This document shows, one piece after another, positions 7,963-41,900 of a DNA stretch of 64,000 bases; within the stretch, counting starts at the first letter, position 1; each line of letters begins with the position of its first letter. The stretch comes from Rebecca billardiae RCC1528 (Eukaryota; Protista; Haptophyta): the NCBI GenBank assembly GCA_965240325.2, contig OZ251254.1:682001-746000 (forward strand). Reading direction: 5' to 3'. Both the position numbers and the translations under genes were made by a program. Below the pieces are notes generated by a model. It saw only the letters and a list, made by a program, of their open reading frames with translations, ran no database searches and was not told where the DNA came from.

Positions 7963-10396
7963 ATGTTGATGCAAGAGCCACCCCCTCCAAATCACTCCGA
8001 GACGGCCGTGCGCGCGCTGCTCGAACGGGCGGCCGCGAACGGGCGGCAGCGACGGGCGCGTGTGCGATGGCCCCTCATTGCACTCGGCTTCACCTGCCTC
8101 GCGACCGGGCTCCCGCTCATCGCCCTCGTCGCCCTGGGCTGGCCAAAGGCGCTGGGCGTGCTGTCCAGCCGAGAGGCGACGAACATCCTCTTCGTGGCAT
8201 CCGGGCTGATGATGACGGGCGGCTGGCTCTTCGTGAGTGCAGTTGTGCCCGGAGACACCCACGGGCCATACCACATCGCCGGCCTCACCATGGCCTTTGG
8301 GCTCGCGCTGTTTGCCATCGACTTGACGCTGACGATTCGCGCCTTCTCCGGCGGCAGCGACTGCGGCACTGCGCGGGAGTGCCGACGGCTGGTCGTCCTC
8401 CGGGTGCGGCAGCTGATGGATCTCGGTCTCGCGGTCATTGCCATCGCCGCGTGCGCGCACATCTTCGCCAGCCGCGTGCGGCACGGCTTGCTGCCGCGGC
8501 GCGTGCGGCGGCAGGTGATCAGCCTGCTGCGGCTGCTGCTGATTGGCTACTCTGCTGGCGTGGTGCTGGTGCGGCTGAGCGCGCTGGTGGACAAGCTCGA
8601 CGACGGGACCAGCGCGGTTGACGATCTGGTCCCCGCGCTCTCGCTGCTGGCGTACGCCATCCTCCTCACGGCCTTCGGCATGTCGTCTGCCACCATCGAG
8701 AGGCTGCACCGCTCGCTGCTGCGGCGCGGGCTGACGGACGGCGCGAGCTCGGCGGCGGTGATCGCCTCGCTGATCAGGGGGACGCGCTCGCCAGCGGAGA
8801 CGATGGAGATGGCCCTCGGCACGCTGCGATGCGTGTCGCTCGACCGGCTGCAGCGCTCGCACCTCGAGCCCCAGCCGCTCCCCGCGCGCAGGCTGCGCCG
8901 GTCTTCGAGTCTCCGGCACGCCAGCATGCTGGGCAGCTTCTACTCTGCGGTCACGTCGCCCCGCCTGCCCGAGGGCGCGTACAGGCGGGCCTCCAGCATG
9001 TTCCGGAGCTCGCCACACGTGCCTGCCGAGCGGAGCGGCCCTACCTCGCCCAGCAGCGAGCGACGCGCGAGCGGCGACACAGCCTCCGCTCCGGGCTCCC
9101 CCGCGAAGAGCGCCCGCCCGTCGGTGCGCCGCACGCGGTACAGCTCTGTGGTCGTGCCGGTCGAGGAGCCGACCGACGAGCTCAGCGCGTTCGAGCCTGC
9201 TCCGCCACCCGCCGCCGCGGCGGCGCCAGCCGGCGATGCTGGGCACGCTCAAGTGTGGGCCAAGGCCGAGTTTGGCGGCATCGACGCCTTTGTCAGCCAC
9301 AGGCACGCGCGCGCGCTGCTCATCCCGCTCGCGCGCGCACCCGCCGTGTCGCCCGCGCCTTGGCTGGCGGCTCGCCCTGACTGACTGACCGTCCCCCCTC
9401 GCGCACGCTGGTGCGTGGCCCCACACCCGCCGGGCCCCCGCCCGCCGCCGTGCGCGCAGCTGGTCGGACGACCCGGACGCCAAGTGGGCGGCGCTGCAGC
9501 GCTGGCGCGAGCGCTTCAAGGCCAAGCATCGGCGCGAGCCCACGATCTGGCTGGACGTGCTGTGCATCGACCAATCAGCGGTCGAGGAGTCGCTCGAGGT
9601 TCTCCCCGTGTACCTCGCGGGCTGCCGCACGCTGCTCGCGCTCGTGGGCGACACGTACACCGAGCGGCTGTGGTGGTGAGCGCCGCGCCCGCCCGCCTGC
9701 CCTGTGGCACGCGCCGCGCGCCGCGATGCCGCCCCGCCCGTGCCCCACCCGCCCCCCGCCCCACCCGCCCCCCTCCGCCCCTGCTCCGCTCACAGCGTGA
9801 TGGAGCTGGCGGTGTTCACGATGGCAGGCGGTGAGCCCGACGAGATCGAGTGGGTGCCGCTCGAGGGCGCCAGCCCGGTGGACGTGCGCGCGATCGACGT
9901 GCGCCGCGCGCGCTGCACGCTCGACGCGGACTCGGACCGGCTCCTCTCGACCATCGACGCCACGTTCGAGGGGATCGACCGCTTCAACGCGTCGGTGCGC
10001 AAGCTGCTCGGTGCTGCGGTCGAGCGCGCGGCGCCCAGCAGGAGCTCGGGCTCGCCGGACGCGCCGCGGCGGCTGCTGCGCGCGCTCAGCAGCTCGGCAC
10101 CGCCGTCCTCGCCGGGCACACGCCGCTGGGAGCTGCACCGCGGCCTGGGGCTAGGTGGACTGGGCCGATCGACGGATGCACTGTCGGCGCCCAACGCACC
10201 GGCCCTCCGCGGCAGCGCGTCACTGGCCGTCCCGGACAGCGAGGCAAAGGCGGACGCGCCCCCCGGCCAGCCCCTGCCGCCTGATGCGCGGCAGCACGGC
10301 GTTCACCTCGCCGGTATTCCAGGGGTCTCCGCATCGCCGGTGCGCATGCCCCCGAACCGAGCACCTGGCGGGCATCTCCCACCGCGCAAATTATAA
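7963..10396 (+). CDS. Six-TM membrane protein with cytosolic TIR/HET-like domain (paralog 1), 3 exons (7963-9302, 9460-9675, 9796-10396)
   Basis: Six hydrophobic segments. Splicing a GC-AG intron (9303-9459) and a GT-AG intron (9676-9795) gives GIDAFVSHSWSDDPDAKW...IWLDVLCIDQ...LPVYLAGC...ERLWCVMELAVF. Colinear with paralog at 39786-41900. Confidence 0.8.
9303..9459 (+). other. Non-canonical GC-AG intron
   Basis: CACAG|GCACGC...GCGCAG|CTGGTCG; this junction restores the SHSW motif seen in paralog 2. Confidence 0.7.
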
Positions 10397-10710
10397 GCGG
10401 CGGCGGCTCCACAGGCGCCCGGCGGCACGGATCACCGAGCGTCCGGCTACTGCTATATATCGGCAGTGTTAGTGCCATGCAGCCGGCGTCGTCAGGGCAG
10501 CTGCGCCGCCTCATAGTTAATTATCAGTATCTGACTCCGAGCCACTCCCGGGGCGAGCCACCGCGAGTGCGGTGCCAGCGCGGCGCGGACTACAAGTACC
10601 GAACCCGCCGCCAGAGCCAGAGGCCGAGGCGGCGTGAAGCCGTGACGAAGTCGGTCGGCGAGACCGATGTTGAAGTCGTGCCTTGGCTAGTCGTTGCTTT
10701 ATTGACGTCG

Positions 10711-10760
10711 TTTATTACTAAATATTGTATATTTGTTAATATATATATAATTATATATAG
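10711..10760. repeat. AT-rich/(TA)n island between convergent genes
   Basis: tttattactaaatattgtatatttgttaatatatatataattatatatag within very GC-rich context. Confidence 0.8.
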
Positions 10761-14325: not shown

Positions 14326-15332
14326 TCAGCTGCGCCCATCAGCCTCGTCACCGCCCGCAGCTGCTGTCAGCGCACTGTCTGCACGGCCCGCCTCGTCTGC
14401 CACCAGCCGCTGCGGCTGCGCGCCCGCCGGTGCTGCCGCCTCGTCGGCGTGCGCCGCGGAGGGCGCCGCCGAGGCCGGCGGCGGCGGCACCGGCGGGCCC
14501 TGCTCCTCGAGCGCGCAGAAGGCGAGCACGTTGAGCGCGGCGCACGCGCCGAAGAGGCGGAAGGCGGCCTCGAAGCCGCCGGTGGCTGAGAGCAGCGCGC
14601 CGGCGAGGCTGACGCCGCACAGCCCGCCGCCGATGTAGCAGACGGCGAGCGCGGACTGCACGGCCGCGAGCGCGGGCGCGCTCAGCACTCTCGCAAAGTG
14701 GCGGCCTGGCAGGCTGGCGAGCAGCGCAAAGCTGCCGCCGAAGCCGAGGCCGTACACGACTGCAAACGCGCGCAGCCTGCCCGCGGTGCGCACCGTGCGC
14801 AGCGGCGCGCCGCCCGTCCGGATCGCGAGGCCGCCGAGGCTCACGCCGCCCTCGAGCAGCAGCGAGGTCGCCGCCAGCCACGTGCACACCGCCGCGAGCC
14901 CCACCGGCCGCGTGAGGCCAGCGTCCACGCCCGCACCGCACAGGAGCTTGGCGAGCACCGAGCTGACTGAGATCAGCATGTGCAGCGCGCCCGCCTCGCT
15001 GAGCGGGATGGCCGCCGCGCCGCGCACGAGGTAGGTGCTCAGGCAGTTCACCAGCGAGAGCAGGATCGCGCCCGAGCACGCGTGCATCAGCGCGAGCGCG
15101 AGGCCGCGGCGTGAGCACAGCGGCGCGCAGAGCGGCGCTCGGAGTGCGCCCAGCGAGCGCTCACGGCGCCGGCGCGGCGGAGGCCGCGCGCCGCCCCCCG
15201 CGCCGCCGGCGCCGCCGGGGCGCGCGCCAGCCGACGCCTCGGGTGCCACGGCCGGCGCACCACCCCAGCATTCGCCGGCCGCCCCGTCGGCCGCCGCCGC
15301 CGCCCTTCCCTCCGGCAGCAGCCGCTGCGCAC

Positions 15333-15375
<43 letters not shown>

Positions 15376-16122
15376 TCGGCCGAAGCCAATGCCCGCCGCG
15401 GCGGTTGCGCTCGGCCCCGCCCAGCCTTCGGCGCGCTCGACGAGCTCGACGCGGCTGCCACCGGAGCTCGACTCCTCTCCGCGTGCGCGCGCGCGCGCGT
15501 CCTCCCGCCGCACCAGGTGCTGCGCGGCCGGCAGTGCGCAGAGCCACGCGAGAGCGCTCGCCACCGCGTACGGGCCTCGCCACGCGCGCCCGCCGGCCGC
15601 GTCGACGGCGGCGGCGGTGAGCTGCTCGCCGAGGCCGATGGCGAGGGAGAAGGAGGACGTGAGCACGCCGATCGCCACGCCGCGCCTGCGCCCGAACCAC
15701 GTCTCGAGCAGCAGCACGTGAGCAAAGACGCCGCCAAACGCGGCGGATGCGCCGAGTGCCGTCTGCGCGACGAGCACGAGCGCAAAGCACGGCGCGAGCG
15801 GGTAGAGCAGCGCGCCCAGGGCCATCAGGAGCGTGCCCGCGCGCACCGTGCGCGCCACGCCCACCCAGCGCACGAGCGGGCCGACCAGCGGCGTCGCGAG
15901 CAGCCATGCGAGCATGTACGCGCTCGGCAGCAGCAGCTGCACGGTGTGCAGCGGCACGCCAAACGCGTCGGCGACGTTGGCGAAGATGGCGGGCGGCGCG
16001 CCGAGGCCGGCGACGATGAGGACGAAGAAGGAGCCCGTCGAGGCGAGCATCACATCGGCGTGCGCCACGAGCTCCTCCGCCTCGCGCGGCGCCTTGCGCG
16101 GCGGCGCCGGGGATGCCATCAT
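14326..16122 (-). CDS. Major facilitator superfamily transporter
   Basis: 598-aa intronless ORF, ~12 TM helices in two halves. Motif-A-like GPLVRWVGVAR, WFGRRRGVAIG and YGLGFGG..AL (monocarboxylate/OFA-like MFS). Confidence 0.9.
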
Positions 16123-19122: not shown

Positions 19123-21443
19123 CAGTGCAAGCAGGCCGCGGCTGTGGACCACCGTATGCGCCCAGGAGCGCGCCGGCAGGCGGGGCCGCGCTTCCCGATC
19201 GCGCTGCGCTCAGGCGCGGTGGCCCGAGCGCTGGTGGGGCCGCGGGGGCAGGGCCGCGAGCCGGCGCCGGCGGCCCGGCGGGCCGTAGTCCTGTCGAGTG
19301 AGTGTCGGCGTGCGCAGCCTGCGGGCCGTGGCGGCGCGGCTCCGGCTGGCGGCGGAGTTGACAGCACAGGCGGCCACGTGTCACGCCAGCACGACGCATA
19401 GTAATCGTCGTCATCATCATCATCATCATCACTACTACTGCTATCGTCTGGCCGTATGAACTCACTGCCCACCACGTCAACAATGCGGCACCGTCCCGCG
19501 CCCGCGGCGGCCGGGACCGTCACTCTGGCCGACACTCACACTGGCAGCACCGGCCGACCGGACGACCCGGCGCCGCGCCGCCGCGTTTATTCGGCCGGCG
19601 GTAATAATAATAATGGTTATAATATTATATTAGTGGCCGGCCACTGTGTGGCCACTGACAGTGACACTGGGCCACAGTCCAGTGGGGCGACAGTCCACAC
19701 GCCCCGCCGCACTCGGTGTCGATGACTCTGATGTCTGATGACGTGTCATCATCACGACCCATCAGGGCACACGGTGGCTGGCTGTCACAGTCGCCAGACC
19801 CACCGGACTCAGACGCCGAGACTGAGAGTACCGCGCGGGTCAGTCACTCCGGGTTCTGCCAGCCGGGCGGCCGCGCCGTATCCGCGACCGCCGCCGGAGT
19901 GCCGGCAGCACAGCCAGCACTGCTCACTCATCGTCCGATCCGGCCGTGGCCGTGCTGTCCGCGGTAGTGGCCGGCTCATCATACGGCATCCGGCCATCCG
20001 CGCCGGTTTCAGCCGTTTCAGGCGGTCAGTGACAGTGACTCACGCCCCGCGCCGTGAATGAGTGCGCGGACGTGAAATAATCGAGCGCGCCAGTATAAGT
20101 TGCAGTAGGCGTCGTCAGATCGTCACGTACCGTAGTGATGGTTTAGTAATGCTCCAACGCCGCCGAGAGCGCCGACCACGAGGAGGAAGGCCACAAGGGG
20201 AGGGACACGGAGAGCACCTCGCATCAGTGCGACGAGCAGCCTGAGCGGAGCCTGCAGCTGCTGGGGCGTGTGCTGGGCGGCGCCGCCGACCTCATCCGAC
20301 GGCGCAGACGTTTGGGGGGCATCCCCTGTGAGCACTTGGGGCCCGGCGCCGCCGTCGATCACGCCGCTGCCCCACCGCGACACCTCCCGCGCTGCCAGCC
20401 GCTTGTTGTGCGGTTGTGCCCGCCGCCGTGCCGCCTCCGCGTGAAGGCGCGCCCATCCAGCGGCTCCAGGATCGACTGCAGGCCCCCGCTCAGCCGCGGC
20501 CTCCGCGCCGCGAGAGTTTGGCCGTGCGAGCTCCGCGCTCGCGAGCACAAAGGACGCCTTCGCCTGCAATGTCCGCCGCGCGGCCTCGTCGACAACGAGG
20601 TGCGCGCAGCACACAGCCTGCTCCGCCCAGGCCACAGGCTCGAGCCGGTCCCAATTCCATTCCTAAGCCGGCTTGATTCCCTGCCCGGGCTGCTTTCGGG
20701 GAGCTCCCAAAAATACCGTGCGCGCCCTCCCGGCCGAAGCTTCGGCCTACAGAAGCCGAAAACCATTTTTTCACACCAGATTCTCAGCTCTGACTCCAGC
20801 AAACGATCGGCTGCGGACGGCGCTGGGGCGGGGCTATGACGACGTTCTTGGGCTCATTGGACGCGCCTTGGCCAGGCGCACACGGCGGTAGCCGCCGATC
20901 TCATCGCCTCCGCGACATCCGAGCTCTACATAGGAAAAACTGGCGCCGTTCCGCACAATAGGGGTCCGTTCCACAATAGGGGTTAAGACGCTACGTTCAA
21001 TAACTCATAGATATAGTCATAATCTCGCGGACTCTCTGTACTCGCGGCCAAACTGCGCTCCGTGCCGCTCGTAGTGAGTCGTCGTCATCAACACATATAT
21101 ATCATATGCAATACTGCTCCGCGGGCGCCGGCCTCCGGCTGAGCTGGGCTGCTGGCAGCAATGTGGCCATCGGTCCGTCGTGATCTGACCGTGTCCGTAG
21201 AATCGTACGGATGAAGGCCTTGTCATTACTCGACAGCATTGAGCATATGACGCGGCGCGGGACGGCGGGTTGACGATGAATGTAGTCGTCGAATCATGAG
21301 ACGCGGCCTAGTCGTCCAGCGCACTGTCGTAGTACTCGTCAGCAGCAGCCAGCAGTGGCTCTGTCCTGCTGGTGGGCGCCGGATGCCCCCAGTGCGGGCT
21401 GCGGCCCTGCGCTCCAGCCCTGCTGGTGCGCACCGCCGCTCGC

Positions 21444-22669
21444 TCACAGTGCGCCTCCCGGCAGCTGCTGCCCGCTCGGCCCCGGCGCGGGGGCCGGCGG
21501 GTTGGGCGGCGCCCCCGCCGCAGCGGGCACGGGCGGCGCGCTGCCGAGCGGGGCCGCCGGGCGCAGCACCGGCGGCTTCTGCTTGGCGGGCGGCCACTTC
21601 CGCTCGTACTCCGCCTCGGGCAGGTGCTGCGCGAGGATGCGCTGCTTGGCGAAGAAGCGCCCGTCCATGCGGCTCACCGCGGCCACGCAGTCGCGCACCG
21701 CCTCGAAGCGCACGTAGACGAAGCCGTTCGACCAGCGGTCGGCCGCGCAGTGCAGCACGGCGCCGGCGGTGGCGAGCTTGCTGCACTCGGTCGCCACGTC
21801 CTGCTCGAGCTCCGAGTAGAAGTTGGGCGCGCTCGCCTCGTCGCTCAGCCGGTCGAACATGCCCTGCGCCCGGGCGCACGGCGGGCGCACGGCGGGCGCA
21901 CAGCGGGCACACGCGCGCGCGCGCAGGCGGAAGGGGCGGCGGACAGGGCGCGCGCAGGGGGGCGGGCGGGTGCGGGCCGCAGCGCCGCGTGGGTGCGTGA
22001 GCGAGCGGCCGCGCAGCACGGCGCGGCGGGGTCGGGCCCAGCTTCCCTCCCTCTCCCCTCCGCCCCGCTGCTTCGGTTTGGGTTCCGCTTGGGTTCCGCT
22101 TGTGCCGGGTGCCGGGTGCCGTGCCGTGCTGTGCCGTGCTGTGCAGCCCCACACGCAGCCGTGTGCACAGCAGCCGTGTGCACACCTTGAGCAGCATGCA
22201 GCGCGAGAGCTGCGGCGCGCCCTCGCCGCCCAGCTGCTGCAGCAGCGAGTCGTCCATCGTGGGCACGGCGCTCGCGGCCGCGCGCAGCGTGTGCGCGGGC
22301 AGCGCCAGCTGCGCGTTCGCCGCGAGCTTGGACATGAGCGACGTCCGCGTCGCGCCGTCCATCCGCTGGCCGCCTGAGCCCTCGTCCAGTGCTGTGTCGT
22401 CTCGCGCGATTGGCTGCTGCTGCGGGGGCGGCGGCGGCAGGAGTCCGGGCGGTGGCGGCGGCGGTGGCGGCGCGGCGGATGCCGCAGCGCCGCCGGGGAC
22501 GCCGGGGACCACGCCGGCCAGCCGCGCCGTCGCCGCGGCGACCGCTGCCGCCACCTCGGCGGCCGCGGCCGAGTGCTGCGCGCCGCCCGCGCCCACGCCG
22601 CCCGGCTGCGGCGGCAGCGCCAGCGGGCCGCCCGCTGCCCCGGGCGCGGCCAGCCCTGCCGCGCCCGGC

Positions 22670-22704
<35 letters not shown>

Positions 22705-23385
22705 GATAGCCGCGGGCGGAAGCATGCCCGGCAACGCCGGCGGCTGCGCCATCGCCGGCGTGGGCAGCGCGCCGGGGGGCGGGCCGGCGGCGGCAGCGGC
22801 GGCGGTGGCGGCGGCGGCAGACGCGGCGCCGCCGAGCGCGTGCGGCGCTGCGCCCACGGCGAGTGCGGCGGCGGCGGCGGCGGCGGCCGTGCCCGGCTTG
22901 GGCGCGGAGCCCGGCTGGATGCTCGCGGGCACGCCCTCGACCGTCACCGTCCGCGCCACGAGCGCCTTCCCGAAGCCGTCGGCGTCGCCCATCTCGACGT
23001 AACCCACGCCGAGGCAGCGGCCGCTGCCGGCGTCGGTGATGAGGCGCACGTTGGCGACGGGGCCGAAGGCGGCACACGCGTCGCTCACGAGCTCCCGGGT
23101 CGCGCCGGGCGCGAGCTGGCGCAGGATCAGCGTGAACTCAGACGTCGCCGAGCTCGACCAGCCCGTCGCGCGCCGGCGCGGCCGCTCGTCCGCGCGCGGC
23201 GGCGGCGAGCGCGAGCGCGAGCGCGAGCGGCGCGAGCGGCGGGGCGGCGAGCCGCGCCGGCGCGGGGGCGAGCGCTCATCGCGCCGGCGCCGGTCGCGTG
23301 AGCGCCGGTCGCGCTCGTACGGCGAGCCGCGCTCGTCGCGCTCGTCGCGCCAGCTGCGCCGGTGGTACTCGCGCGGCGACGGCAT
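21444..23385 (-). CDS. RBM39: RBM39/CAPER-like splicing factor (RS domain, one RRM, RBM39 linker, UHM), intron 21864-22185
   Basis: RS-rich N-terminus; RRM (VRLITDAGSGRCLGVGYVEM); linker LDEGSGGQRMDGATRTSLMSKLA; UHM SRCMLLK|GMFD...ELEQDVATECSK...GFVYVRF...MDGRFFAK. Confidence 0.8.
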
Positions 23386-27555: not shown

Positions 27556-29424
27556 TTACGCCGGCGAATAAGGCGGCGGAGGCAGCGGCGGAGACGGCGC
27601 GGGCTTCACGCTCACGCCGCGCACGGCTGTCGCCGTCGGCACGGGGACAACGACCATCACGCTCGGAGCGGAAGAGGCTGGCGCGTCTGCCGCGCCCGGC
27701 TCCGCAGGCGTACGAGCCGCGCCTGCCTCGCGCTGCCGCCGCCGCCGGCGCAGGAGCCACCACGCCCCGGCGCCACACAGCGCGAGGCCCACCGCGCCCC
27801 CCGCTGACAGCCCCACTAGCAGAGGCACGTCCGCGGCCGCGGCTGCGCCCTCCGACACGTAGGCAAAGCCACGCCCGCCAGCGCCGCGGTAGCAGGTGGC
27901 GTCTACCTGCTCCGCGCCCGCCCACGTGGTGCCCGGCGTGCCCGTGATCTCGGCCACTGCCATCATCCCCTCGTCCTCGTGCTCCAGCCGGTGGCAGTGC
28001 AGCACCTGCTCGCCCACGAACGTGTCAGCCTGGAAGCGAACGGTCGCGCCGTCGCCGCCCGGTGTGAGCAGTGTGTCGTGCCAGTCGCCTGTGCGCAGGT
28101 AGCCGTGCGCGCCCGGGTCGAGGCGGGTGATCTGGAAGGGGTTGATGTGCAGGTGGAAGGGGTGCCTGCCCACCCCGCGCAGCGTCCACTCGTGCACCGC
28201 GCCCACCGCCAGCTCCGTGATGGGCGCGTGGTCCGGTGCAAACCTCTCCCCGTTGATCTGACGGCCGCCCCCCAGCGCCACCTCGAACGAGCTCGCCACG
28301 CTCGCGGAGGCGTGGGAGCCGGTGAGGTCGACGAGGTAGCACGGGCGCGTGACGGCGAAGGACGGGAGGTCCGCCGTGGCCTCCGGCTCCCCACTCACCT
28401 CCACGCTGAGCACGCTCCCCGTCCACAGCCCGCCCCCACCGCCGCGGCCGCCGCGGCGCCCATCACCCTGCAGCGCGCGGCCGCGCTCGCCGCCGCTGCG
28501 GAGGCTGTAGGAGCCCGCCGCTCGGCATCGCAGTGCGTAGTCCGCGCGCGCGCCGGGGTACATGAGCACCGTCTCCACGGCGCGCGGCGCCACCGCGAGG
28601 TAGACGCCGTCCTTCGCGAGCAGCCCGATCTCGCAGCCGGGCAGCGCGAGCTCCAGCCGGGACTCGACGGCCGCATACAGCGTGCGCCAGCGGTACCACC
28701 GGCCCGCGCGCAGTCGCACGACCGGCTCGAACTGGCCGTTGGCGAGCATGGCGTCGACGTGCTCGCCCGAGACGCGGTGCAGCTCGCCGCCCGCGCGGCG
28801 CTCGATCCCCGCGAGCACCTCCGTGTCCACGTGCGTGAGCACGAGCACCACCTCCTCGAGCGAGCCCAGCTCGGGCGGCAGCTCCCCCGGCGCGTCCTCC
28901 ACAATCAGCATGCCCGCCGCGCCGCCGCCGGCCTGCACCGCGGTGGAGCCGTGGTGGTGCGGGTGGTACCAGTGCGTGCCGCCCATGTGGAACGCGGGGA
29001 TCGCGTACTCGTACTCGAACGACTCGCCCGGCTCGACCTGCACGAAGACGCTGTCGGCGGGCGCGGCGCTCGACACGTGAAGACCGTGCGTGTGCAGGTT
29101 GGTCGTGTTCACGTCGCCGAGCTCGTTGTGGCCCGTGCTCGACGCGCCGTTGGCGCCGAGCTCGTTCGACAGCGTGACGTGCACCGCGTCGCCCGCCCGC
29201 ACGCGCAGCGTCGGCCCGGGGATGGCGCCGTCGAAGCCGCGCGTCCAGAAGGACGCGCCCGACGGCGCGTTGTACTCGAGCGCGCTCAGGGCGAGGTCGA
29301 CGCGGAGCGTGCCGTCAGACGACGCGTGCGAGGGCGGCGGCGAGAGGTCGGCGTTGCGCGCGGAGTAGTCGATGCCCGCGACGCAGACGCCCAGGGTGGC
29401 GAGCACGAGCGTGCGCACGCGCAT
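27556..29424 (-). CDS. Membrane-anchored three-domain multicopper oxidase
   Basis: Signal peptide; IPGPTLRV; Cu motifs TNLHTHGLH, WYHPH, HPFHLH, HCHRLEHEDEGMM; C-terminal TM helix plus RRRRR stop-transfer; intronless. Confidence 0.93.
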   Translation of the reverse strand: MRVRTLVLATLGVCVAGIDYSARNADLSPPPSHASSDGTLRVDLALSALEYNAPSGASFWTRGFDGAIPGPTLRVRAGDAVHVTLSNELGANGASSTGHNELGDVNTTNLHTHGLHVSSAAPADSVFVQVEPGESFEYEYAIPAFHMGGTHWYHPHHHGSTAVQAGGGAAGMLIVEDAPGELPPELGSLEEVVLVLTHVDTEVLAGIERRAGGELHRVSGEHVDAMLANGQFEPVVRLRAGRWYRWRTLYAAVESRLELALPGCEIGLLAKDGVYLAVAPRAVETVLMYPGARADYALRCRAAGSYSLRSGGERGRALQGDGRRGGRGGGGGLWTGSVLSVEVSGEPEATADLPSFAVTRPCYLVDLTGSHASASVASSFEVALGGGRQINGERFAPDHAPITELAVGAVHEWTLRGVGRHPFHLHINPFQITRLDPGAHGYLRTGDWHDTLLTPGGDGATVRFQADTFVGEQVLHCHRLEHEDEGMMAVAEITGTPGTTWAGAEQVDATCYRGAGGRGFAYVSEGAAAAADVPLLVGLSAGGAVGLALCGAGAWWLLRRRRRQREAGAARTPAEPGAADAPASSAPSVMVVVPVPTATAVRGVSVKPAPSPPLPPPPYSPA

Positions 29425-29760
29425 GGCGAGATGGCGCGACGCTCGGCCGGGCACGCAAGGACGCTCGTTCGTCGTCGCGAGCGAAAGCGCGGTTTCCGCG
29501 ACATGTCGCTCTCGCCTCTGCCCTCTGGCGATCGCCAGCTACTAGTCTACTATACTCCGACAGTAGGGGGGTAAAGTTCGTCAGTAGTCGTTTACTCAGC
29601 AGTACTGTATGTATGATGATACAGTACACAGACGTACAGTCACTGTACAGTGTCAGTAGGAACAGGCTGCGCTCACGAGACACGACGTACGTCACACGAG
29701 TCTCAGACTCATATAGCATTAGCAGCGACGATGATGTCACGATGAGTCTCAGCCGCCAGT

Positions 29761-30515: not shown

Positions 30516-33473
30516 CTACCCCTGCTGCTGCGGCGGGTTGATCTTAATCATGTCGTCGATGCGCAGGATGCTGACCGCCGCCTCGGTGGAGAACTGAATG
30601 ATCTTCACCTTTGAGAGGCTCGGCTCCAGCACGCCCTCCGCCACGTTGTCCACCACCAGTCTGCGCCACCGAGCACGCACGCGGCGGGAGGGGCACGTCA
30701 GCCCCCGCTGAGAACCCGGCGGCAGCGGGCGCACGCGCGCGTGTACCCGCGCGGCACTCGCAGCGGCCGGTGCACGGCGCGCGCACACGCACACGCACGC
30801 GCGCGCGCGCATGCGTGGCGCTCTGCGCGCGCACCCTTCGTACACGTTGAGGCCTGTGCGCGCGAGCGCCGCCTTGGAGGCGTCCGTCTGCGCCTTGTGG
30901 TGCTTGGCGCGCAGCTTGGCGACGAGGTCGGTGGCGTCGCACGCGCCGTTGATCGCGAGCTGCTTCGGGATCACGAGCAGCGCGTCGGCAAACGCCGCGA
31001 CCGCCAGCTGCTCGCGCGTGCCGAGCGTGAGCGAGAAATTCTCCAGGTAGATCGACAGGGCCGCCTCCACCGCGCCGCCGCCGGGCACGACGGAGTTGGA
31101 CTCGAGCACGCGCTTCACCACGCACAGCGCGTCGTGCAGGGAGCGCTCGAGCTCGCCGAGCAGGTGCTCGTTGGCGCCGCGCAGCAGCACGGAGCACGCC
31201 TTGCTCATCTGCGCACGCCGGGGCCGGGGCGCACACAGCGGGCGCACAGCGGGGCGCACTCAGCGGGCGCACAGCGGGGCGCACTCAGGCGGCACGCCGG
31301 AGGGAGGGTGTGCGGTCGGGACCGGCGGCGGGCGGCGGTGTGCGTGCGCGCGGTGCGGTGCGCGTGCGCGCACCTTGGCCCCCTTGATGACGATCATGTC
31401 GTCGTCCGCCACGCGCTCCTCGCTCACCAGCTCCGCGTGCCCGAGCATCGCCGGGTCAAAGGACTCGTCACCTTCCATGTTGACGAGCGTGGTCATCAGC
31501 GTGCCGCCCGTCAGCTTGGCGATGCGGCGCAGGTCCTCGCGCTTCACGCGGCGGCACGCGATCGCGCCCGCCTCGACAAAGTACTTGAGCGCCATGTCGT
31601 CGATCCCCTTGGTGGTCAGCACCACGTTGGCGCCCGCCGCGATCAGCAGCTTGATCCGCTCCGCCGTGATGTCCAGCTCCTTCTGCCTGATCTTGTCCAG
31701 CTCCGCCGGGTCGTTGACGAGTACGGAGACGCCCATGTGCATCTTGGCCTTGCGCAGGTCGATGTCGAGGAGCGCGATGCGCGCGTTGGGCACGGCGGTG
31801 GGCATGCCCTGCGCCGCGCGGCCCATCGTGAGCGCGTACCCGTTGAGCAGCTGCGAGTCCTTGGCGCTCTGGCCGTGCTGCTGCATGATGCCCACAGACT
31901 TGACGGGGTAGCGCGGCCGCCCGTCCTCGCCCACCACCTTGACCGACAGCATGGCGTCCACCGCCATCTTGGCGAAGAAGTCCTGCGCGCGGAGGGAGGG
32001 GGCGGCGTGGCGCGGGGTGGCGCGGTGGTCAGCTGGGCTGGGCGCACAGCACGGCCGGCCGGCGGGCCGGGGCGCGGGAGTGCGGAGTGCGCGCCCAGGG
32101 CCGCGTGTGCCCGGGGCTCTTGCTGTGGCATGGGGCGCGGCCTGGCCGCTGAGAGCGGCCGCGGGTGGCCCCGCGCTCGCGCAGCCGGCCGGCTGGCCAG
32201 ACAGCCAGGTGTCAGAGCGGCGCGCACGTCGCGCCCAATGTCCCCACGGCCGCGGGCCGCCCGCCCGCCCGCCGCGGGGCGCGCGGCGCAGCGGGCGGCG
32301 CGTGCGCGCGCGGTGCTGGCGCGCGCGGTGCTGGCGCGCGCGGTGCTGGCGCGCGCGCTCACCGTGTCCTTGCCAAAGATCTTCGAGTTGAGGCACGTCT
32401 TGGCGCACTGCAGCAGCGTCTCCGGGCCGAGGGACGCCGTCTTGATCGAGAGCGCCTCCTTGATGTACTTCACTGCGCGAGCGAGCGGAGGGCGGCGCGG
32501 CGGGGCAGCAGCGGCGGCCGCGGCGGCAGCGGCGGCAGCGCCGGTTGAGGCGCGGCAGCGCCGGTTGAGGCGCGGACGGTGAGGCGGCGGGCACGCGCGC
32601 GCGCGCGCGCGCGCGGCGCGGACGGCTCGCGGCGCGGGCGCGCGCGCGCGCGCACCCGACTCCTTCATCGCCAGCCGGTACCCCGACATGATCGTCGTCG
32701 GGTGGATCCCGTCCTTGACCAGCTCGTTCGCCCTCTGAGCACGCGAGGGCGCGGCACGCGAGGGCGCGGGGCGTGCCGCAGCCGCGGGGGAGCGCGGCGC
32801 GCGCGGAGAGGCGGCGGCGGATGGGGCACGGCGGCGTGTGCCGAGGGCGCGCGCGCGGGTGAGCGCGCGGATGACGCGCGCCGAGCACGCCGCGCGGCCA
32901 CGCCACCCGCCGCGGCCGCGGCCGCGCGTGCCGGCGGCGCTTTGCGCTGCGCCGCACCCGTAGCAGCTCAGCGGCAACGATGACGACGGAGGTGGTGCCG
33001 TCGCCGACCTCCTTGTCCTGCAGCTCGGAGAGCTCGACGAGCACGCGCGCCGCCGGGTGCTCCACCTCGAGCTGCTTCAGGATCGTCGCGCCGTCGTTGG
33101 TGATCGTCACGTCGCCGATGTCGTCGACAAGCATCTTGTCGAGCCCGCACGGACCGAGCGAGGTCTTGACGATGTTGGCGATCGAGATGGCGGCGGTGAC
33201 TGCGCGGGAGGGGAGCGTGCAGGTCGCGAGCCGCGCGCGCGCGCGCGAGCGCGTGAGCCGCGCGCGTGCGGGCGCCGATGCGTGTGCGCGCGCCGCGTGG
33301 CCTGCGCGTGCCGCCGCCGGGCGCGCCCGGCGCGCGCGCGCCGCGCGGCGGGCGCGCGCGGGCCGGGCGCGCGCGGCGGGATGGGCGCGTGGGCGCGCGC
33401 ACGGACCATTCTGCGTGCGCACGTCCTGCCCCGTCGTGCGCTCGCCGTCGATCATCAGCTTCGAGTCCGCCAT
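30516..33473 (-). CDS. TCP1: T-complex protein 1 subunit alpha (CCT1), 7 exons (introns 33200-33406, 32735-32957, 32473-32655, 31983-32362, 31209-31373, 30661-30834)
   Basis: [96 protein letters not shown]. Confidence 0.97.
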
Positions 33474-33785
33474 CGCTGCTGCCTGCACGCGCAACGACTC
33501 AACCGCCCGCGCTGCTGCTACCGGCGCACGCTCGTGGAGGCTCGCGCAGCGGCCGTGAGCGTCCGGGCTCAACTGCCCGCCAAGTCCTGGAGCTCTGCAA
33601 GCTCTCCCAGCCGCCATCGCCGATTGAAAGCTGCTCCGCTTGGGTCGGAGACTCGGAGTGCCGCACGCACGCGTTCGGCGTGCTCGCGCGCGCATCGCGC
33701 CGTCCCGCGCGAGCCCCTCCACCGCCCGGCTCCGCCTCGCCCGCGCCCACGCCTCGCCCGGCGCACGGCGTGGCCGGCCCCCAGC

Positions 33786-34451
33786 ATGGCGGACGAGGGC
33801 GCACCCGCGCCGGGCTCGCACAAGCGCAAGGTGGCGGATGACCCGGCCGCGCGCGGCCTGCGCTCGGCGCCGGCGCACAAGGTGCGCCGTCCGAGCCTCG
33901 AGGGCGACGAGCTGCTTCCCGACGCCGCCGAGCCCGCCCAGCCGCTCGCGGCGGGCGAGCAGCCGGCGGGCGTCGACACGGCGACGGACGCCGAGGCGGC
34001 GCAGGCCGCGCCCGAGCCGGAGCCGGAGGGCGCGCCCGCCGCCGCTGCCGCCGCCTCGCTCGAGGACCTGACGCTCAAGTGCGTCGAGTGCACGGAGAAC
34101 TTCGTGTTCAGCGGCGAGGAGCGCGCGTTCTACCTCGCCACCTTCCGCCGCGACACGCTCCCGCAGCGCTGCAAGAAGTGCCGCCAGGCCAAGAAGAAGC
34201 GGTTCGCCGATTACAAGGCGGCACACCCGCCGGCCGAGGGCGGCGGCGGCGGCGGCCGAGGGCGCGGGCGCGGCGCGGACGGCCGCGGCGAGGGCGAGCG
34301 CGGCGAGGGCGAGCGCGGCGAGGGCGAGCGCGGGCGCGGCGGGCGCGGTGGTTTCGACGGGCGCGGGCGAGGGCGTGGCGACGGCGGCGAGCGCGGCGCC
34401 GCGCCCACCGGACTCCGCTTCGGCCGCGGCGGCGGCCGCTTTGTCGGCTGA
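33786..34451 (+). CDS. Zinc-ribbon (zf-trcl/PF13451-like) protein with RGG-rich tail
   Basis: [24 protein letters not shown]...PQRCKKCR followed by GRGRG, (GEGER)x3 and RGG repeats. Confidence 0.85.
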
Positions 34452-36603: not shown

Positions 36604-36616
36604 CCCCCCCTCGACA

Positions 36617-38602
36617 TCATGCCGAAGGCGGCGGAGGTGGTGGAACAGCATGCAGTATCGCCACGACGTGTTTCAGAAAAGTACTCGTCGCGGTAGCCTT
36701 GGTCATGATGTCGGACCGGTTGTCGTCGGTCGACACCTTCTGGATCAGCACGGCGCCGTCGGCTTGCGCGCGCCGCGTGAAATGGTACTTCACGTCAATG
36801 TGCTTGGTGCGCTTGTGGTGCACCGGGTTGTTCGTCAAATCGATCGTGCCCTGGTTATCCTCGTAGATCACCGTCGTGGGCTCCACGACCGGCTCGTTCA
36901 AAAACGTGACCAGGTCGCGCAGGTAGATCACCTCGCGGCAGCACTCGCTCAGCGCGATGTACTCCGCCTCGCACGTAGACAACGCGACCACGCTCTGCAG
37001 TCCGCTGTGCCACGAGATCGGGACCCCGTTGTACATAACAAGGTACCCCGTCGTAGAACGTCGATCTTCACGATCGTTCGCCCAGTCTGAGTCCGCGTAC
37101 GCCACCAAATCAGGGTGTTGTGCGTGCGTCGCGTGCCGGAAGAGGATGCCGCGCCGACGCGTGCCGAGCAAGTATCGGAGCGTGCGCTTCGCGGCGGTCA
37201 AGTCGTAGAGCCGGGGATTGGACATCCGGCGTGCCAGCATGTTCACGGCGTGTGCGATGTCGGGGCGACACGTCGTCATGCAGTACATGAGGGCACCGGT
37301 CATCTCCTGGTAGTGCTGGCGGTCAGCGCGCAGCAGGAGGGCTTGCAGCGGGCGGGGGATCTCGCGCGTCTCGCTGCACTCGGGGGTCGGTGGGTGGCGC
37401 TCTCCACTCAGGTGGAAGCGCTCGCACACATCACCGATGTACTGGTTCAGGTGGGTAAACAGTCCGTCCACCGTGGTCTCAAATTCGGCGCCAAGGAACT
37501 TGCTCAGGCAGTCCGCGCCCTGCATCTCGTAGTGCGTCAGCAACGCCGTCATCAGCGCGTCCAACGCGTTCTTGTCCTTCGAGATGTTCATCATCAGCAG
37601 ATCGTCGACAAAGTGACCGACGAACACGTAACCGCCATCGACTGCCTTCGAGTAGATGCACGGCGCGCTCGGGCACGGCTCGAACCCATGTTCGAGCAAA
37701 CACTTACGCAAGTGTAGGTACCACACGCGCCCAGTCTGGCGCATGCCAGGGAGCGCCTTCACAACAGCCTGCACCGTCTGCGCGGCGGGTCTGCTCCGCC
37801 TCGCTCGGTCTCGTCGCATCGGGTCGTAGTCGCGCGGCAGCTCGGGCGCCGCGGACTCACCAGCTCGTGCGTCGTCATCGCCTCCGGCGTCATCGCCGTC
37901 GGCGCTCGGTTGCGCAGCTTCGCTCGCCGCGCCCCCGTCGTCATGAGCAGCAGCGCCGCCGTCATCGGCAGCACCGTCCTCAATCTCAAAATGCTCGTCG
38001 CCCTCGCCGGTGAGCTCGCCGTCAGCGGCGTCCCCCAGCTTAGTCTCGAGCTCGGCATTGTCATCGCTGAGCGCGAATGGAGTGTGCCTCCCCTCGACCA
38101 GCGACCGCTCATCAATGATGTACACGTCCTTTGAGTGTATCACCTGCTGCTGCCCGTCATCGAGCAGCACCTCGCGCCCCGTCCAGCTGTCCTCTCGTGA
38201 GGATGGTCGGGGCGCTCGCAGCATCGGTCTCAGCGGATGCCGTGAAGGGTAGGCATCGTTGCCACTCCCATCATCATCGAGCTCGTGCTCGACGTTGTCG
38301 ATCACGGGGACCGTCCAGGCCCCCGCCGCGGTGTCGTCACCGCAAGTGCCACACGCGGGCACGTCAATGCTTGCGCGGTTCGTACCGCGCGCGCAGCCGC
38401 CCTGCAGGCGGAGGACATTCGAGGTTGCGTAGCGGATGTCCTTCTGGTAGTCACCGAACTCGTACACCACGCCGTGCGTGGGCATCTGGTTCATCAGCGC
38501 GCTTTCACTCGGCTGCTCGATGCAGAGCGCGCTGCACGCGAGCATCATTGCCCGCGCGTTCGTCGCGACACCCGCGGCGCTGCGACCGGCTGGATGGGCC
38601 AT
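36617..38602 (-). CDS. Truncated copia pol (integrase C-terminal remnant, C-terminal half of RT, complete RNase H)
   Basis: QVIHSKDVYIIDE (IN tail), KALPGMRQTGRVW, FVDDLL, RPDIAHAV, YADSDWA, STCEAEY, EDNQG, RTKHIDVKYHF, DIMTKA. No gag, protease, IN core or RT N-half motifs seen. Confidence 0.88.
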   Translation of the reverse strand: MAHPAGRSAAGVATNARAMMLACSALCIEQPSESALMNQMPTHGVVYEFGDYQKDIRYATSNVLRLQGGCARGTNRASIDVPACGTCGDDTAAGAWTVPVIDNVEHELDDDGSGNDAYPSRHPLRPMLRAPRPSSREDSWTGREVLLDDGQQQVIHSKDVYIIDERSLVEGRHTPFALSDDNAELETKLGDAADGELTGEGDEHFEIEDGAADDGGAAAHDDGGAASEAAQPSADGDDAGGDDDARAGESAAPELPRDYDPMRRDRARRSRPAAQTVQAVVKALPGMRQTGRVWYLHLRKCLLEHGFEPCPSAPCIYSKAVDGGYVFVGHFVDDLLMMNISKDKNALDALMTALLTHYEMQGADCLSKFLGAEFETTVDGLFTHLNQYIGDVCERFHLSGERHPPTPECSETREIPRPLQALLLRADRQHYQEMTGALMYCMTTCRPDIAHAVNMLARRMSNPRLYDLTAAKRTLRYLLGTRRRGILFRHATHAQHPDLVAYADSDWANDREDRRSTTGYLVMYNGVPISWHSGLQSVVALSTCEAEYIALSECCREVIYLRDLVTFLNEPVVEPTTVIYEDNQGTIDLTNNPVHHKRTKHIDVKYHFTRRAQADGAVLIQKVSTDDNRSDIMTKATATSTFLKHVVAILHAVPPPPPPSA

Positions 38603-38637
38603 GCCCGGCGGTCCGTGGTTTCACACGTTTGAGCTCA

Positions 38638-39396: not shown

Positions 39397-39420
39397 TATA
39401 TATATGTATATATATATATA
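39397..39420. repeat. (TA)n microsatellite
   Basis: atatatatatgtatatatatatata. Confidence 0.85.
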
Positions 39421-39785
39421 CTTGATTGCTGAGCGCGCGCGCGCTCGTCGGACCGGCGCGAGTCGCGTCGGCGCTCGACTCAGGCTGTCGTCGTGACTGT
39501 CGTTAGTAGCAGCAGTATGAAATTTCAGAAGGCCGCGCCGTGCCGCCCGATTTCGACGGCCTAAGGGCGACAGGCCGCTGGACACCGCGTCACTGCCACA
39601 GGCGGACAGCCGATGACGGATGAGAGCCGACCGGATGAGTACGGCTGTACGGCAGTCACGACGAGCTCGTCGTCCCGGACTGGCAGCAGCATCTGCAGCA
39701 TGCGCGCTGACCACGCGCAGCAGGCGGCTGAGCGGCGGCACCCGCGCCGTGCCCGGCCGCCCGGCCGCGGCTACGTCGGCAGCGG

Positions 39786-41900
39786 CTACGTCGGCTCGGT
39801 GAAGGAGCGTCCGGAGAGCCTCGGCGGCGCGCACGCGTGGCCACGGCCCTTGCTCTCGGGCCGCGGTGGCGACGGCAGCGTGCGGTGCGGGTCGGTGTGC
39901 TGCACGAGGCCGACCTGCTGCTGCAGCATGGCCAGCACGCTGCCCGCGCCCGTGGGCTCCTCCGCCGGGCTGCCGCCCTCCGCGCGCGCCTGCCCCCCCC
40001 GCGGGCCGCCCGCGGGCAGCAGCTGCGCCTTCGAGTGGCTGCGCGACGCCCACGTGCGCGAGGAGAAGGACGAGGCGGCCGAGGACACGGCGCCCTGAAG
40101 CGCGGCGGCGCCGCCGGAGCCGCGCGGCCCGCCGCCGCCGGGCATCGCGCCGCCGTCGGTGATCGCGCGCAGGAGCGTCTCGCGCACGAGCGCGTTGAAG
40201 CCGTGCACGCCGTCCGCCGACGCCTCGATCATCGTGAGCAGCCGCTCCTTGTCCTCCGCCAGGTCGCACTGCGCCTGCTCGACCGAGAACGCCTGCACCG
40301 CCGAGATGGTGATGTGCGCCGCGCCCAGCACACGCACCTGGATGCGCGAGCGCGCGGCCCCCATCGCGACAAACATGAAAAGCTCTGCGGCGCACCAGAC
40401 GCGCTCGAGGACCGTGTCGCCGAGCAGCAGCACGAGCGTGTCGCACCCCGCGAGGAAGAGCGGCAGCGCCGCGAGCGTGTCCGAGATGGCGTCCGCGGCG
40501 ATGCACGCCTTGTCCAGCCACAGCTGCGGCTCCCGCCGGTGCGCGCGCCTGAAGTCAGCGCGCCACGCCTGCAGCGCGGCCCACTTGGCGTCGGCGTCGT
40601 CGTGCCACGAGTGGCTGTGCGCGCGGCGCGCGGGCGCGGGGCGGGGCGCGCGCGTGAGCCGGCGGCGCGGCCGCGTGCCACGCGCGCACAGCGGCGCACC
40701 GTGCGCGCAGCAGCAGCGGCAGCAGCAGCAAGCGGCAGCAGCAGCAGCAGCGGCAGCGGCAGCGGCAGCGGCAGCGGCAGCGGCAGCGGCAGTGGCAGCG
40801 AGCAGCGAGCGGGTGCGCAGTGCGCGGCAGCACGGCGCGCACGCTGACACACGACGCACGCACTCCGCGCGCGCACAGACGCACGCGCACGCACACACGC
40901 AGCCACGCGCACACGGCTGCGCCCGCCGCCCACACCGCGCCCAGCGCGCGCACCTCACGAACGCGTCGACCTGCCCAAAGGTGGCGGGCGCGGAGAGTCG
41001 GAAGAGCGCCGGGTCGGGCGCGGCCGAGCTCAGGTGCTCGCGCGCGAGGTGCTCGGCGGAGATGCAGCGGAAGCTGGCGTGCGCGAACTCGGTGAGCTCG
41101 CCCACCGGCCGCGCGCTCATCAGCGCGCCGATCCCCGCCGAGACCGACGCGGACGCCGTGCGCGCCGCAAGCCACCCTTGCACGCGCGAGCGCACGTGCG
41201 GCCGTCGCACGAGCACACCGAGCGCGAGCAGCTGCAGCGCTGAGAAGTAGGCGGCGGCGAGGGTGAGCGCGGTCTCGCCCGGCGCGGCGGTGGGCGGCAT
41301 CAGTGAGAGTATCACCGCGTACGTGAGCACCACCGGCGCCAGCTCCAGGTACAGCGCGCCCAGCGCCCGGAAGTGCGCGTCGAGCGTGAGCCGGGGCGGC
41401 AGCCGCAGCGAGCGGAGGAGCGCGAGCGCGTGCAGCACGAGCGCGGCGGAGGAGGCGACGGTGAGGCACAGGCCGACGTAGACGAACCAGCACGGGCGCA
41501 CCGCGACGAACGTGCGGCACTGCCCGCCCTCGCCCTCCCTCGCCACGATCCCCAGCACGAGCAGCACAGAGACACTCGTCCACACCGCGATCGACGCGAC
41601 CGAGACGGCCACGCCGCAGCAGGCGACGGCGCGGACGAGGACGCGGTCGGTGGGGAGGAGCGCGAAGAGGACCATCGGGAAGCTCAGCAGGACCAGCGCC
41701 GTGCCCAGCTGCGCCGGCGCGAGCAGCACCCAGAGCGCGATGCCGCTGAGCGTGCACAGCGCGCTGCTGATGAAGATGGGGATGCGCACGCGGCGCGTGA
41801 AGAGGCGGCCGGCGTGGCGCGCGGCGAGCAGGTTGCGCCTGATCTCGTCGACGCCCACGTCGATCGCGGCGGCGCCCTCGGGCACCGGATCGTCGCCCAT
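39786..41900 (-). CDS. Six-TM membrane protein with cytosolic TIR/HET-like domain (paralog 2), intron 40615-40953
   Basis: ATG 41900 (MGDDP); six hydrophobic segments; spliced FGQVDAFVSHSWHDDADAKW...LWLDKACI...LPLFLAGC...ERVWCAAELFMF. Confidence 0.82.
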   Translation of the reverse strand: MGDDPVPEGAAAIDVGVDEIRRNLLAARHAGRLFTRRVRIPIFISSALCTLSGIALWVLLAPAQLGTALVLLSFPMVLFALLPTDRVLVRAVACCGVAVSVASIAVWTSVSVLLVLGIVAREGEGGQCRTFVAVRPCWFVYVGLCLTVASSAALVLHALALLRSLRLPPRLTLDAHFRALGALYLELAPVVLTYAVILSLMPPTAAPGETALTLAAAYFSALQLLALGVLVRRPHVRSRVQGWLAARTASASVSAGIGALMSARPVGELTEFAHASFRCISAEHLAREHLSSAAPDPALFRLSAPATFGQVDAFVRCARWARCGRRAQPCARGCVCACACVCARAECVRRVSACAPCCRALRTRSLLAATAAAAAAAAAAAAAAAAAAAACCCCRCCCAHGAPLCARGTRPRRRLTRAPRPAPARRAHSHSWHDDADAKWAALQAWRADFRRAHRREPQLWLDKACIAADAISDTLAALPLFLAGCDTLVLLLGDTVLERVWCAAELFMFVAMGAARSRIQVRVLGAAHITISAVQAFSVEQAQCDLAEDKERLLTMIEASADGVHGFNALVRETLLRAITDGGAMPGGGGPRGSGGAAALQGAVSSAASSFSSRTWASRSHSKAQLLPAGGPRGGQARAEGGSPAEEPTGAGSVLAMLQQQVGLVQHTDPHRTLPSPPRPESKGRGHACAPPRLSGRSFTEPT
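40708..40806. repeat. (GCA)n/(GCAGCG)n microsatellite inside intron
   Basis: cagcagcagcggcagcagc...gcggcagcggcagcgg tract. Confidence 0.85.

Follow-up and report, generated by a model that had tools for sequence, protein, structure and literature searches.

Two genes in the window (the whole stretch of 64,000 nucleotides that was analysed), here called A and B, raise the question of what kind of membrane protein they encode and whether its cytosolic part could act as an enzyme. The original prediction saw in them two paralogous six-TM proteins with a TIR/HET-like domain, members of a candidate algal receptor/NADase signalling family.

Gene models and genomic context

Gene A (7963–10396, plus strand) consists of three exons encoding six TM helices, a helical linker, a conserved domain of about 170 residues and a disordered tail. 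Exon 1 (7963–9302), delimited as an open frame by its translation, starts with an Arg-rich N-terminal segment, followed by the six TM helices (~8074–8682), the linker (~8734–8877), a disordered Ser/Pro/Arg-rich insert (~8878–9252) and the TIR strand betaA, IDAFVSH (9280–9300), after which the exon ends with AG. The Cys pair of DCGTAREC (8359..8382), aligned to the CxnC columns of the family, lies in the TM3–TM4 loop and is predicted to be outside. Intron 1 (9303–9459, GC-AG) interrupts the second Ser codon of SHSW, and its removal restores the invariant H-S-W. Exon 2 (9460–9675) covers TIR alphaA to betaC, reading (S)WSDD...WLDVLCIDQ...LPVYLAGC...ERLW plus TG, and intron 2 (9676–9795, GT-AG) interrupts the Cys codon of WCVMEL. 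Neither intron displays codon periodicity. Exon 3 (9796–10396; C-VMEL...FNASVRKLL...) contributes the conserved Glu codon of VMEL (9803–9805); the TIR fold ends at ~10009 and a low-complexity tail leads to the stop codon. GC3 is 0.88 in exon 1 and 0.94 in exon 2.

Gene B (41900–39786, minus strand) has two exons with the same order of six TM helices, helical linker, domain of about 170 residues and disordered tail. Its exon 1 (41900–40954, GC3 0.96) again begins with an Arg-rich segment and contains the TM helices (~41777–41208), the Cys pair QCRTFVAVRPC of the TM3–TM4 loop (41490..41522), the linker (~41159–41010) and betaA, VDAFV (40970–40956), ending with AG. The GT-AG intron of 339 nt (40953–40615) interrupts the first Ser codon of SHSW. 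As it is in frame and free of stop codons, the entire ORF of gene B can be read through. The stretch that it would encode is missing from all homologues and has a pLDDT below 50 in the AlphaFold read-through model; an imperfect (GCY)n microsatellite is found inside this intron. Exon 2 (40614–39786; SHSWHDD...WLDKACIAA...LPLFLAGC...ERVWCAAEL...FNALVRETL, stop codon) keeps a GC3 of 0.9–1.0 as far as the stop; the Glu codon of WCAAEL is at 40385–40383 and the TIR fold ends at ~40161, followed by a disordered Gly/Ala/Ser/Pro-rich tail. In the AF2 model of gene B, the helices at 14–232 (six long helices) and residues 436–582 are both above pLDDT 90. The protein departs from the family at Y87 and at the almost invariant Q of CIDQ, where it reads CIAA.

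Both genes were found where they had been predicted, with the quoted motifs, sequence and translation being in agreement. Exon GC3 is 0.88–0.97 across both genes and the three introns are without periodicity, which supports the exon/intron model; the splice junctions are putative, derived from homology together with this periodicity. One might suspect pseudogenes, wrongly assigned introns or copies that are not transcribed, given that intron 1 of gene A requires a non-canonical GC donor and that the intron sites of A and B differ by 6 nt. Such wrong models or silent genes are very improbable in view of the open frames, a periodicity that is strong in exons and nil in introns, the recovery on splicing of every invariant family residue, the confident structure models and the unbroken motif in transcript-derived homologues (e.g. 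Trinity contig P0020).

Judged from the alignments, the similarity between A and B far exceeds chance (exon 2 of A versus B, 58% identity, E 3e-29; exon 3 versus B, 37%, E 6e-11; linker versus linker, 37%, E 4e-4). Paralogy holds in the sense that both belong to one family, but they are no close pair, each having ~25 nearer relatives among the 150 metagenome representatives listed. The ~30 kb between them encode an MFS transporter, an RRM protein, a multicopper oxidase, a CCT chaperonin and a Copia reverse transcriptase. These genes are unrelated to A and B, so that the span 7963–41900 is misleading as one unit. The window DNA is very GC-rich and of haptophyte type. A scan of its six-frame translation with the family profile found exon 2 of A (E 3e-35) and exon 2 of B (E 2e-55) and no third family copy in the window.

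Fold and motifs of the conserved domain

Structural comparison bore out the predicted TIR fold, a flavodoxin-like alpha/beta arrangement with a parallel sheet (betaA–betaE), both for the AF2 model of a close homologue's domain (pLDDT 89.9) and for the gene B model. The 50 Foldseek matches listed for the homologue model all belong to the TIR superfamily, including one SEFIR domain from a prokaryote; SNC1 and RUN1 had E values of 8e-4 to 1e-3 and a probability of 0.99. VIA returned TIR domains in 49 of the 50 matches listed, at Z 10.3–7.8 over 110–135 residues, including AbTir (Z 10.3), SPARTA TIR (10.2), MyD88 (9.8), RUN1 (9.6) and SARM1 (9.2). The read-through model of gene B matched the TIR domain of SARM1 (Z 7.9), IL-18Rbeta (7.7) and MyD88 (7.6); in the SARM1 match, model residues 310–590 join betaA of exon 1 with exon 2. 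Fold similarity to known TIRs is moderate (Z about 8–10, TM 0.3–0.5). The sequence FD..C..D..LL..IE..FG..FN, previously set apart as a tail, falls within the TIR fold alignment (model residues 13–180) and is not a separate element. Architecture and TIR fold of the A and B proteins can be assigned with high confidence.

The motifs of the domain are DxFxSHSW, WxDKxCIDQ, LPxxLxGC and RLWCxxE. Across 80 members, sixteen columns never vary, those of H-S-W, WxD and RxWCxxE among them, and A and B retain all sixteen; E96, the Glu of WCxxE, is invariant in the 80 and present in both. In the HMM alignment, RlWCvlEl of the family falls on STWCLNEL of SNC1 (betaC–alphaC), whose Glu, at the start of alphaC, is the catalytic one. 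Since the WCxxE Glu also occurs in TIRs long seen as non-enzymatic adaptors, its conservation by itself is no proof of catalysis.

Pfam TIR gave nothing at E≤10 on the A and B proteins, neither of which reached the gathering score of TIR or HET, and PADLOC had no match for the window proteins. The best PDB sequence match is SIGIRR. Exon 2 of gene A matches Pfam HET at E 0.01 (16.6 bits, cut-off 22.5) over profile positions 43–64 of 146 only. Within the 80 members, TIR_2 was matched by 61 (best 6.7e-7), HET by 52 (best E 0.004) and TIR by 13; P0001 scored 17.1 bits against TIR_2, the cut-off being 28. The resemblance to HET that had been claimed is real but local, being limited to the WxDxxCIxQ block. 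The best explanation is a TIR fold of a HET-like subtype.

Enzymatic TIRs (AbTir, SPARTA TIR-APAZ, RUN1/SNC1/RPP1, SARM1, ThsB) have in common with the family of A and B the flavodoxin-like TIR fold (Z 8–10), the betaA motif DxFxSH and ..WCxxEL. Identity to them is just 10–17%, however, the Pfam TIR_2/TIR matches of the family are mostly sub-threshold, and the domain is longer (about 170 aa) with a HET-like WxDKxCIDQ block in the betaB region. It is placed C-terminal to a six-TM bundle, whereas the partners of enzymatic TIRs are NB-LRR, ARM-SAM or Argonaute. Fungal HET domains (PF06985) share the three-block pattern (S/Y)xW..., WxDxxCIxQ and RxWxxxE, but profile matches of the family are confined to the WIDxxCIDQ block and none attains the gathering score. 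Moreover, the A/B family is membrane-bound, not NLR-like or lectin-like, and its hosts are algae, not fungi. HET domains, which are inducers of cell death, have been described as remote homologues of TIR (PMC10890737).

Membrane topology and the protist family

A and B have six hydrophobic segments each and lack an N-terminal hydrophobic signal. The predicted common architecture, with no N-terminal signal, six TM helices, linker and conserved domain, is seen in both. Positively charged residues are unevenly distributed in 66 members. K+R is high in the N-terminal segment (5.1), loop 4–5 (3.95) and the C-juxtamembrane segment (4.7) and low in loops 1–2 (0.09), 3–4 (1.5) and 5–6 (0.5). The proposed N-in/C-in topology fits the positive-inside rule across these members and would put the TIR-like domain into the cytosol, an orientation that we consider probable.

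Like Toll-like and IL-1 receptors, A and B combine a membrane-embedded part with a C-terminal TIR in the cytosol. TLRs, however, cross the membrane once and bear large LRR or Ig ectodomains. A and B, with six TM helices, expose hardly any ectodomain, and Pfam detected neither LRRs nor another ectodomain in them. For the idea of a variable sensor joined to a conserved enzyme the case is weak. The predicted outside loops are very short (mean 3, 21 and 10 residues) and the Cys pair occurs in ~52% of family members, so that a role as ligand sensor is weak. The TM module, for its part, is conserved family-wide.

The family was defined by profile A3, which combines the TM module, an AAAxIAxL...RFR linker and the domain with its 16 invariant residues. 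For application to A and B the profile was built without the window rows. It found exon 1 of A at E 2.5e-23 for the best domain and 7.5e-25 for the whole sequence (residues 11–305), exons 2 and 3 of A at 8e-42 and 1.6e-15, and exons 1 and 2 of B at 8e-33 and 6e-65; both proteins have the defining elements and belong to the family. The profile search returned at least 6,204 clusters at 50% identity (E≤1e-3), 1,183 of them at E≤1e-30, and in most near-full-length matches several TM segments are predicted ahead of the domain. 'Algal' is roughly right for the family: it is mostly from Haptophyta, but members were also found in the transcriptome of a dinoflagellate and in a single-cell assembly of Picozoa. 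A member from E. huxleyi CCMP1516 (XP_005770760.1) is in the P0011 cluster. A and B are two ordinary, dispersed members of this very large, mostly haptophyte marine-protist family.

According to a study of 2025 (PMC12489294), some TIR genes of Gephyrocapsa (Emiliania) huxleyi encode several TM helices at the N-terminus and react to infection with EhV. The likeness of these virus-responsive proteins to A and B consists in haptophyte host and architecture, an intracellular TIR with conserved Glu being preceded by multiple TM helices or by an extracellular N-terminal region. The published genes may belong to the six-TM/HET-like subfamily; the paper itself defines no family, TM module or linker.

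Mode of action and significance

The most likely scheme for the action of A and B, which we infer, starts from a protein with, in order, a cytosolic Arg-rich segment, the family-specific six-helix TM bundle, a conserved helical juxtamembrane linker, the cytosolic TIR-fold domain and a disordered tail. The TM/linker modules would be brought together by a cue sensed at or within the membrane, or by altered protein density, after which the cytosolic TIR domains would self-associate. In the manner of enzymatic TIRs, the associated domains would then cleave NAD+ or a related nucleotide by means of the invariant Glu. The outcome would be either a signal or NAD+ depletion, as part of a stress, antiviral or cell-death response. 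Taken by itself, the putative NAD+-cleaving chemistry is tentative, falling somewhat short of even odds. As a whole, a six-TM membrane protein with cytosolic TIR and Glu-dependent nucleotide cleavage in such a response is the best explanation, with a probability of roughly 0.55.

The TIR-like domain could instead be a homotypic assembly platform as in TLR/MyD88, recruiting partners once the membrane proteins have clustered and carrying out no nucleotide chemistry. MyD88, IL-1R-family and TLR TIR domains score as high as enzymatic ones (Z 8.5–9.8), SIGIRR leads the PDB sequence matches, and a WCxxE-type motif is no privilege of enzymes. We nevertheless consider a pure scaffold unlikely: 16 invariant columns in 80 divergent members resemble an active site more than a contact surface, the individual structures that match best (AbTir and SPARTA) are enzymatic TIRs, and a partner carrying a matching domain is not known. 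More doubtful still is that the six-helix bundle itself is the effector, a pore, channel or membrane-disrupting element switched on when the TIR/HET-like domain oligomerises or binds a nucleotide, in the manner of cell-death executioners; the bundle would then not serve as a sensor upstream of an enzyme. This would agree with outside loops too short for a classical ligand-binding ectodomain, with the conservation of TM module and juxtamembrane linker across the family, and with the link, mechanistically unexplained, between HET domains and regulated cell death (PMC10890737). The bundle, however, has no match to known channels or transporters; its scores (Z≤10) are those of helical bundles in general, and the Atlas gave no named family for it.

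TIR domains are central in immunity and cell death of animals, plants and bacteria, and very little is known about those of bloom-forming ocean algae killed by giant viruses. The six-TM TIR/HET-like family is polytopic and membrane-anchored, has motifs bridging HET and TIR and comprises some 6,000 diverged clusters at the least. More speculatively, and with odds well against it, its six-TM/linker/TIR-HET-like proteins might make up a major class, so far undescribed, of polytopic membrane enzymes that act in immunity or cell death of marine protists, convert a membrane cue directly into NAD-derived signalling or NAD+ depletion and link HET to enzymatic TIRs. Such a cue could be, for example, viral fusion, lipid change or membrane damage. 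If this were true, the family would be a sequence intermediate between fungal HET and enzymatic TIRs and would supply the long-missing mechanism of HET. Activity of the proteins would provide TIR biology with a new receptor/enzyme architecture and offer a tractable route into HET-type cell death. A and B, being plain members without added ectodomain, are therefore convenient minimal constructs.

Gene structure and splicing

Gene A starts with a methionine codon at 7963 on the + strand, and its open reading frame runs as far as ...FGGIDAFVSH, where the frame is broken. The family-invariant residues H-S-W and W-C-x-x-E are recovered only if two introns on this strand are spliced out, at 9303–9459 (GC-AG; junction DAFVSH-S-WSDD) and at 9676–9795 (GT-AG; junction ERLW-C-VMEL). 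Gene B starts with a methionine codon at 41900 on the - strand and has a single predicted GT-AG intron of 339 nt (40953–40615). This intron is in frame and without stops, so that the whole ORF can be read through, and it contains an imperfect (GCY)n microsatellite that would be translated as poly-Ala/poly-Cys. Automatic gene callers will therefore probably report one ORF of 760 aa containing a spurious insertion. Gene A was examined exon by exon, and gene B by way of its natural read-through ORF (704-residue model).

The exon/intron models are supported by sequence composition, structure prediction and comparison with homologues. GC3 is 0.88–0.97 across the exons of A and B, and codon periodicity is absent in the introns. 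In the AlphaFold model of the gene B read-through product the 113 intron-coded residues have a pLDDT below 50 and are flanked by parts above 90, and no homologue was found to carry a matching insertion. Intron 1 of gene A interrupts the second Ser codon of SHSW, and the gene B intron the first; the two positions share their phase and differ by 6 nt, an offset that could have arisen by intron sliding or by two independent gains. An additional C-terminal exon or domain is not proposed, given that GC3 stays in frame up to the stop in B and that AT-rich DNA follows both genes.

Identity of the conserved domain

Neither A nor B reached a Pfam threshold; the sole match was HET (E 0.01) in the WLDVLCIDQ block of gene A. 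PADLOC returned nothing for pieces of the window. Among 80 family members, Pfam matches were to TIR_2 in 61, to HET in 52 and to TIR in 13, the best TIR_2 match having an E-value of 6.7e-7; P0001, the closest homologue, covers nearly the whole TIR_2 profile. A sequence-profile search of the PDB gave weak TIR matches only (SIGIRR, 0.09; SNC1, 0.46).

The AlphaFold2 model of the P0001 domain (residues 268–470, 80-row alignment) had a pLDDT of 89.9. All of the 50 PDB matches listed by Foldseek belong to the TIR superfamily, one of them being a prokaryotic SEFIR. The structural alignment search VIA gave Z-scores of 10.3 for AbTir (114 residues, 3.1 Å), 10.2 for the SPARTA TIR, 9.8 for MyD88, 9.6 for RUN1 and 9.2 for SARM1; 49 of the 50 matches listed are TIR domains, the exception being 1t1j, an unannotated structural-genomics chain (Z 8.1). 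The 704-residue model of gene B itself matched the SARM1 TIR (Z 7.9), IL-18Rbeta (7.7) and MyD88 (7.6), with betaA supplied by exon 1 and the remainder by exon 2. The modelled structures thus support a TIR fold, as the original prediction had proposed. The alignments extend over residues 13 to 180 of the P0001 domain model, and the conserved stretch C-terminal to WCxxE, previously regarded as a separate tail, is therefore the C-terminal part of this fold.

Sixteen columns are invariant in the 80 aligned domains: H, S and W of SHSW; W and D of WxD; L; LP; C; G; R, W, C and E of RxWCxxE; a later C; and F of FN. All are kept in both A and B; gene B deviates at the nearly invariant Q of CIDQ (CIAA instead) and at Y87. 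In the HMM alignment to SNC1, RlWCvlEl of the family falls on STWCLNEL, whose Glu is catalytic in plant TIRs. Canonical TIRs lack an equivalent of the WxDKxCIDQ block, which is HET-like. The HET resemblance is thus local and stays below the Pfam threshold. HET has been described as a distant homologue of TIR that triggers cell death, by a mechanism not yet known (PMC10890737).

The membrane module

Both proteins contain six TM helices, a linker and the TIR-like domain. Six segments appear in the hydropathy profiles of A and B, and six long helices are present in the gene B model, in agreement with the original prediction. A family profile built from 64 full-length homologues, leaving out the window rows, matched exon 1 (TM and linker) of A with E 2.5e-23 and that of B with E 8e-33. 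The six-TM module is consequently conserved in the family and not a free-varying appendage, and the idea of a variable sensor is weak.

Mean numbers of K+R over 66 aligned members were 5.1 in the N-terminal juxtamembrane stretch, 0.09 in loop 1-2, 1.5 in loop 3-4, 3.95 in loop 4-5, 0.5 in loop 5-6 and 4.7 after TM6. By the positive-inside rule this distribution fits the predicted N-in/C-in topology, which would place the TIR-like domain on the cytosolic side. With means of 3, 21 and 10 residues, the predicted outside loops are short. The Cys pair of loop 3-4, put forward as a feature of an outside loop, is found in only ~52% of members.

A GPCR, channel or transporter identity for the TM bundle was rejected as unsupported. 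Foldseek with the whole gene B model gave nothing significant, a wide VIA search of the PDB gave generic helical-bundle matches only (BAR domains, designed helical barrels; Z ≤ 10.2), and a feature search of the cluster resource Atlas gave only unnamed haptophyte clusters with scores of 0.86 or lower.

Family context and possible function

A word-index search yielded five homologues with the same layout as A and B. When 1.84 billion cluster representatives were searched with a profile, 6,204 proteins matched at E ≤ 1e-3, of which 2,788 reached E ≤ 1e-10 and 1,183 reached E ≤ 1e-30. In most near-full-length matches the domain is preceded by several predicted TM segments. The recorded taxa of the nearest Atlas clusters are mostly Haptophyta. 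One homologue cluster includes E. huxleyi CCMP1516 XP_005770760.1, and others derive from a transcriptome of Gymnodinium smaydae and from a single-cell assembly of Picozoa. Related Atlas domain clusters show fusions to HNOB (heme NO-binding; haptophytes) and to TPR repeats (oomycetes, ascomycetes). Among viral structures no close homologue was found, the best match (E 3.8e-4) being a TIR/WD40 protein from Tetraselmis virus 1.

Two metagenome homologues depart from the common layout. P0002 (883 aa) contains, at residues ~150–270, a second divergent TIR/HET-like block (VLSYGW..HPDP, LFWDFGCLP, ERGWCVFE) upstream of the TM module, so that the bundle would be flanked by domains at both ends. In P0006 (1110 aa) the domain profile matches twice and about ten hydrophobic segments are present; either this is a tandem fusion, or the gene caller has merged two adjacent genes.

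The best-supported reading is that the proteins are TIR modules anchored in a membrane and acting in signalling or cell death. The TIR domains would be brought together when the proteins cluster through their TM/linker part. By analogy, the invariance of His, Asp, Arg and Glu suggests enzyme chemistry, most plausibly NAD+ cleavage or synthesis of a nucleotide signal, as in AbTir, plant TIRs and SARM1; a purely scaffolding TIR is a less likely alternative on this point. Less likely still, the TM bundle itself would be the effector and damage membranes once the TIR/HET-like domain activates it, which would fit the tiny ectodomain. It is improbable that the gene models are wrong, against which the exon/intron evidence speaks, or that the genes are silent.

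A study of Gephyrocapsa huxleyi published in New Phytologist in 2025 reports 15 virus-responsive TIR genes (PMC12489294), so that haptophyte membrane TIR proteins have been published already, at the level of a transcriptome survey. In the literature searched, no description was found of the six-TM module or its linker, nor of the HET-like motif set or how large the family is. Genes A and B represent the plain form and lack any additional ectodomain.

The domain exons of A and B are homologous (58% identity, E 3e-29; 37%, E 6e-11) and their linkers weakly similar (E 4e-4), and BLAST detected no similarity between their TM regions. The paralogy initially proposed is borne out as homology, but not as a local pair: gene B ranks only 24th–26th among matches to the gene A exons. 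Since neither is the other's nearest relative, a recent local duplication was rejected; A and B are two members of a large family and lie dispersed. When the six-frame translation of the window was scanned with the profile, no third copy was found.

A functional gene cluster was likewise rejected, as the genes between A and B are unrelated. All on the - strand, they encode an MFS transporter (14326–16122), an RRM protein (21226–23385), a three-domain multicopper oxidase (27556–29454) and a CCT/TCP-1 chaperonin subunit (31260–34226). Directly downstream of gene B, where the DNA is AT-richer, there is an ORF with a Copia-type reverse transcriptase (36617–38602, -; RVT_2, E 6e-18). GC content of the window is 63–87% in 2-kb bins, and its genes have spliceosomal introns. 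The stretch 45400–53500, upstream of a kinesin-like gene, has 86–87% GC and open frames of 1,500–2,100 codons in several frames on both strands, and has the appearance of low-complexity coding sequence or of an extreme bias in composition.
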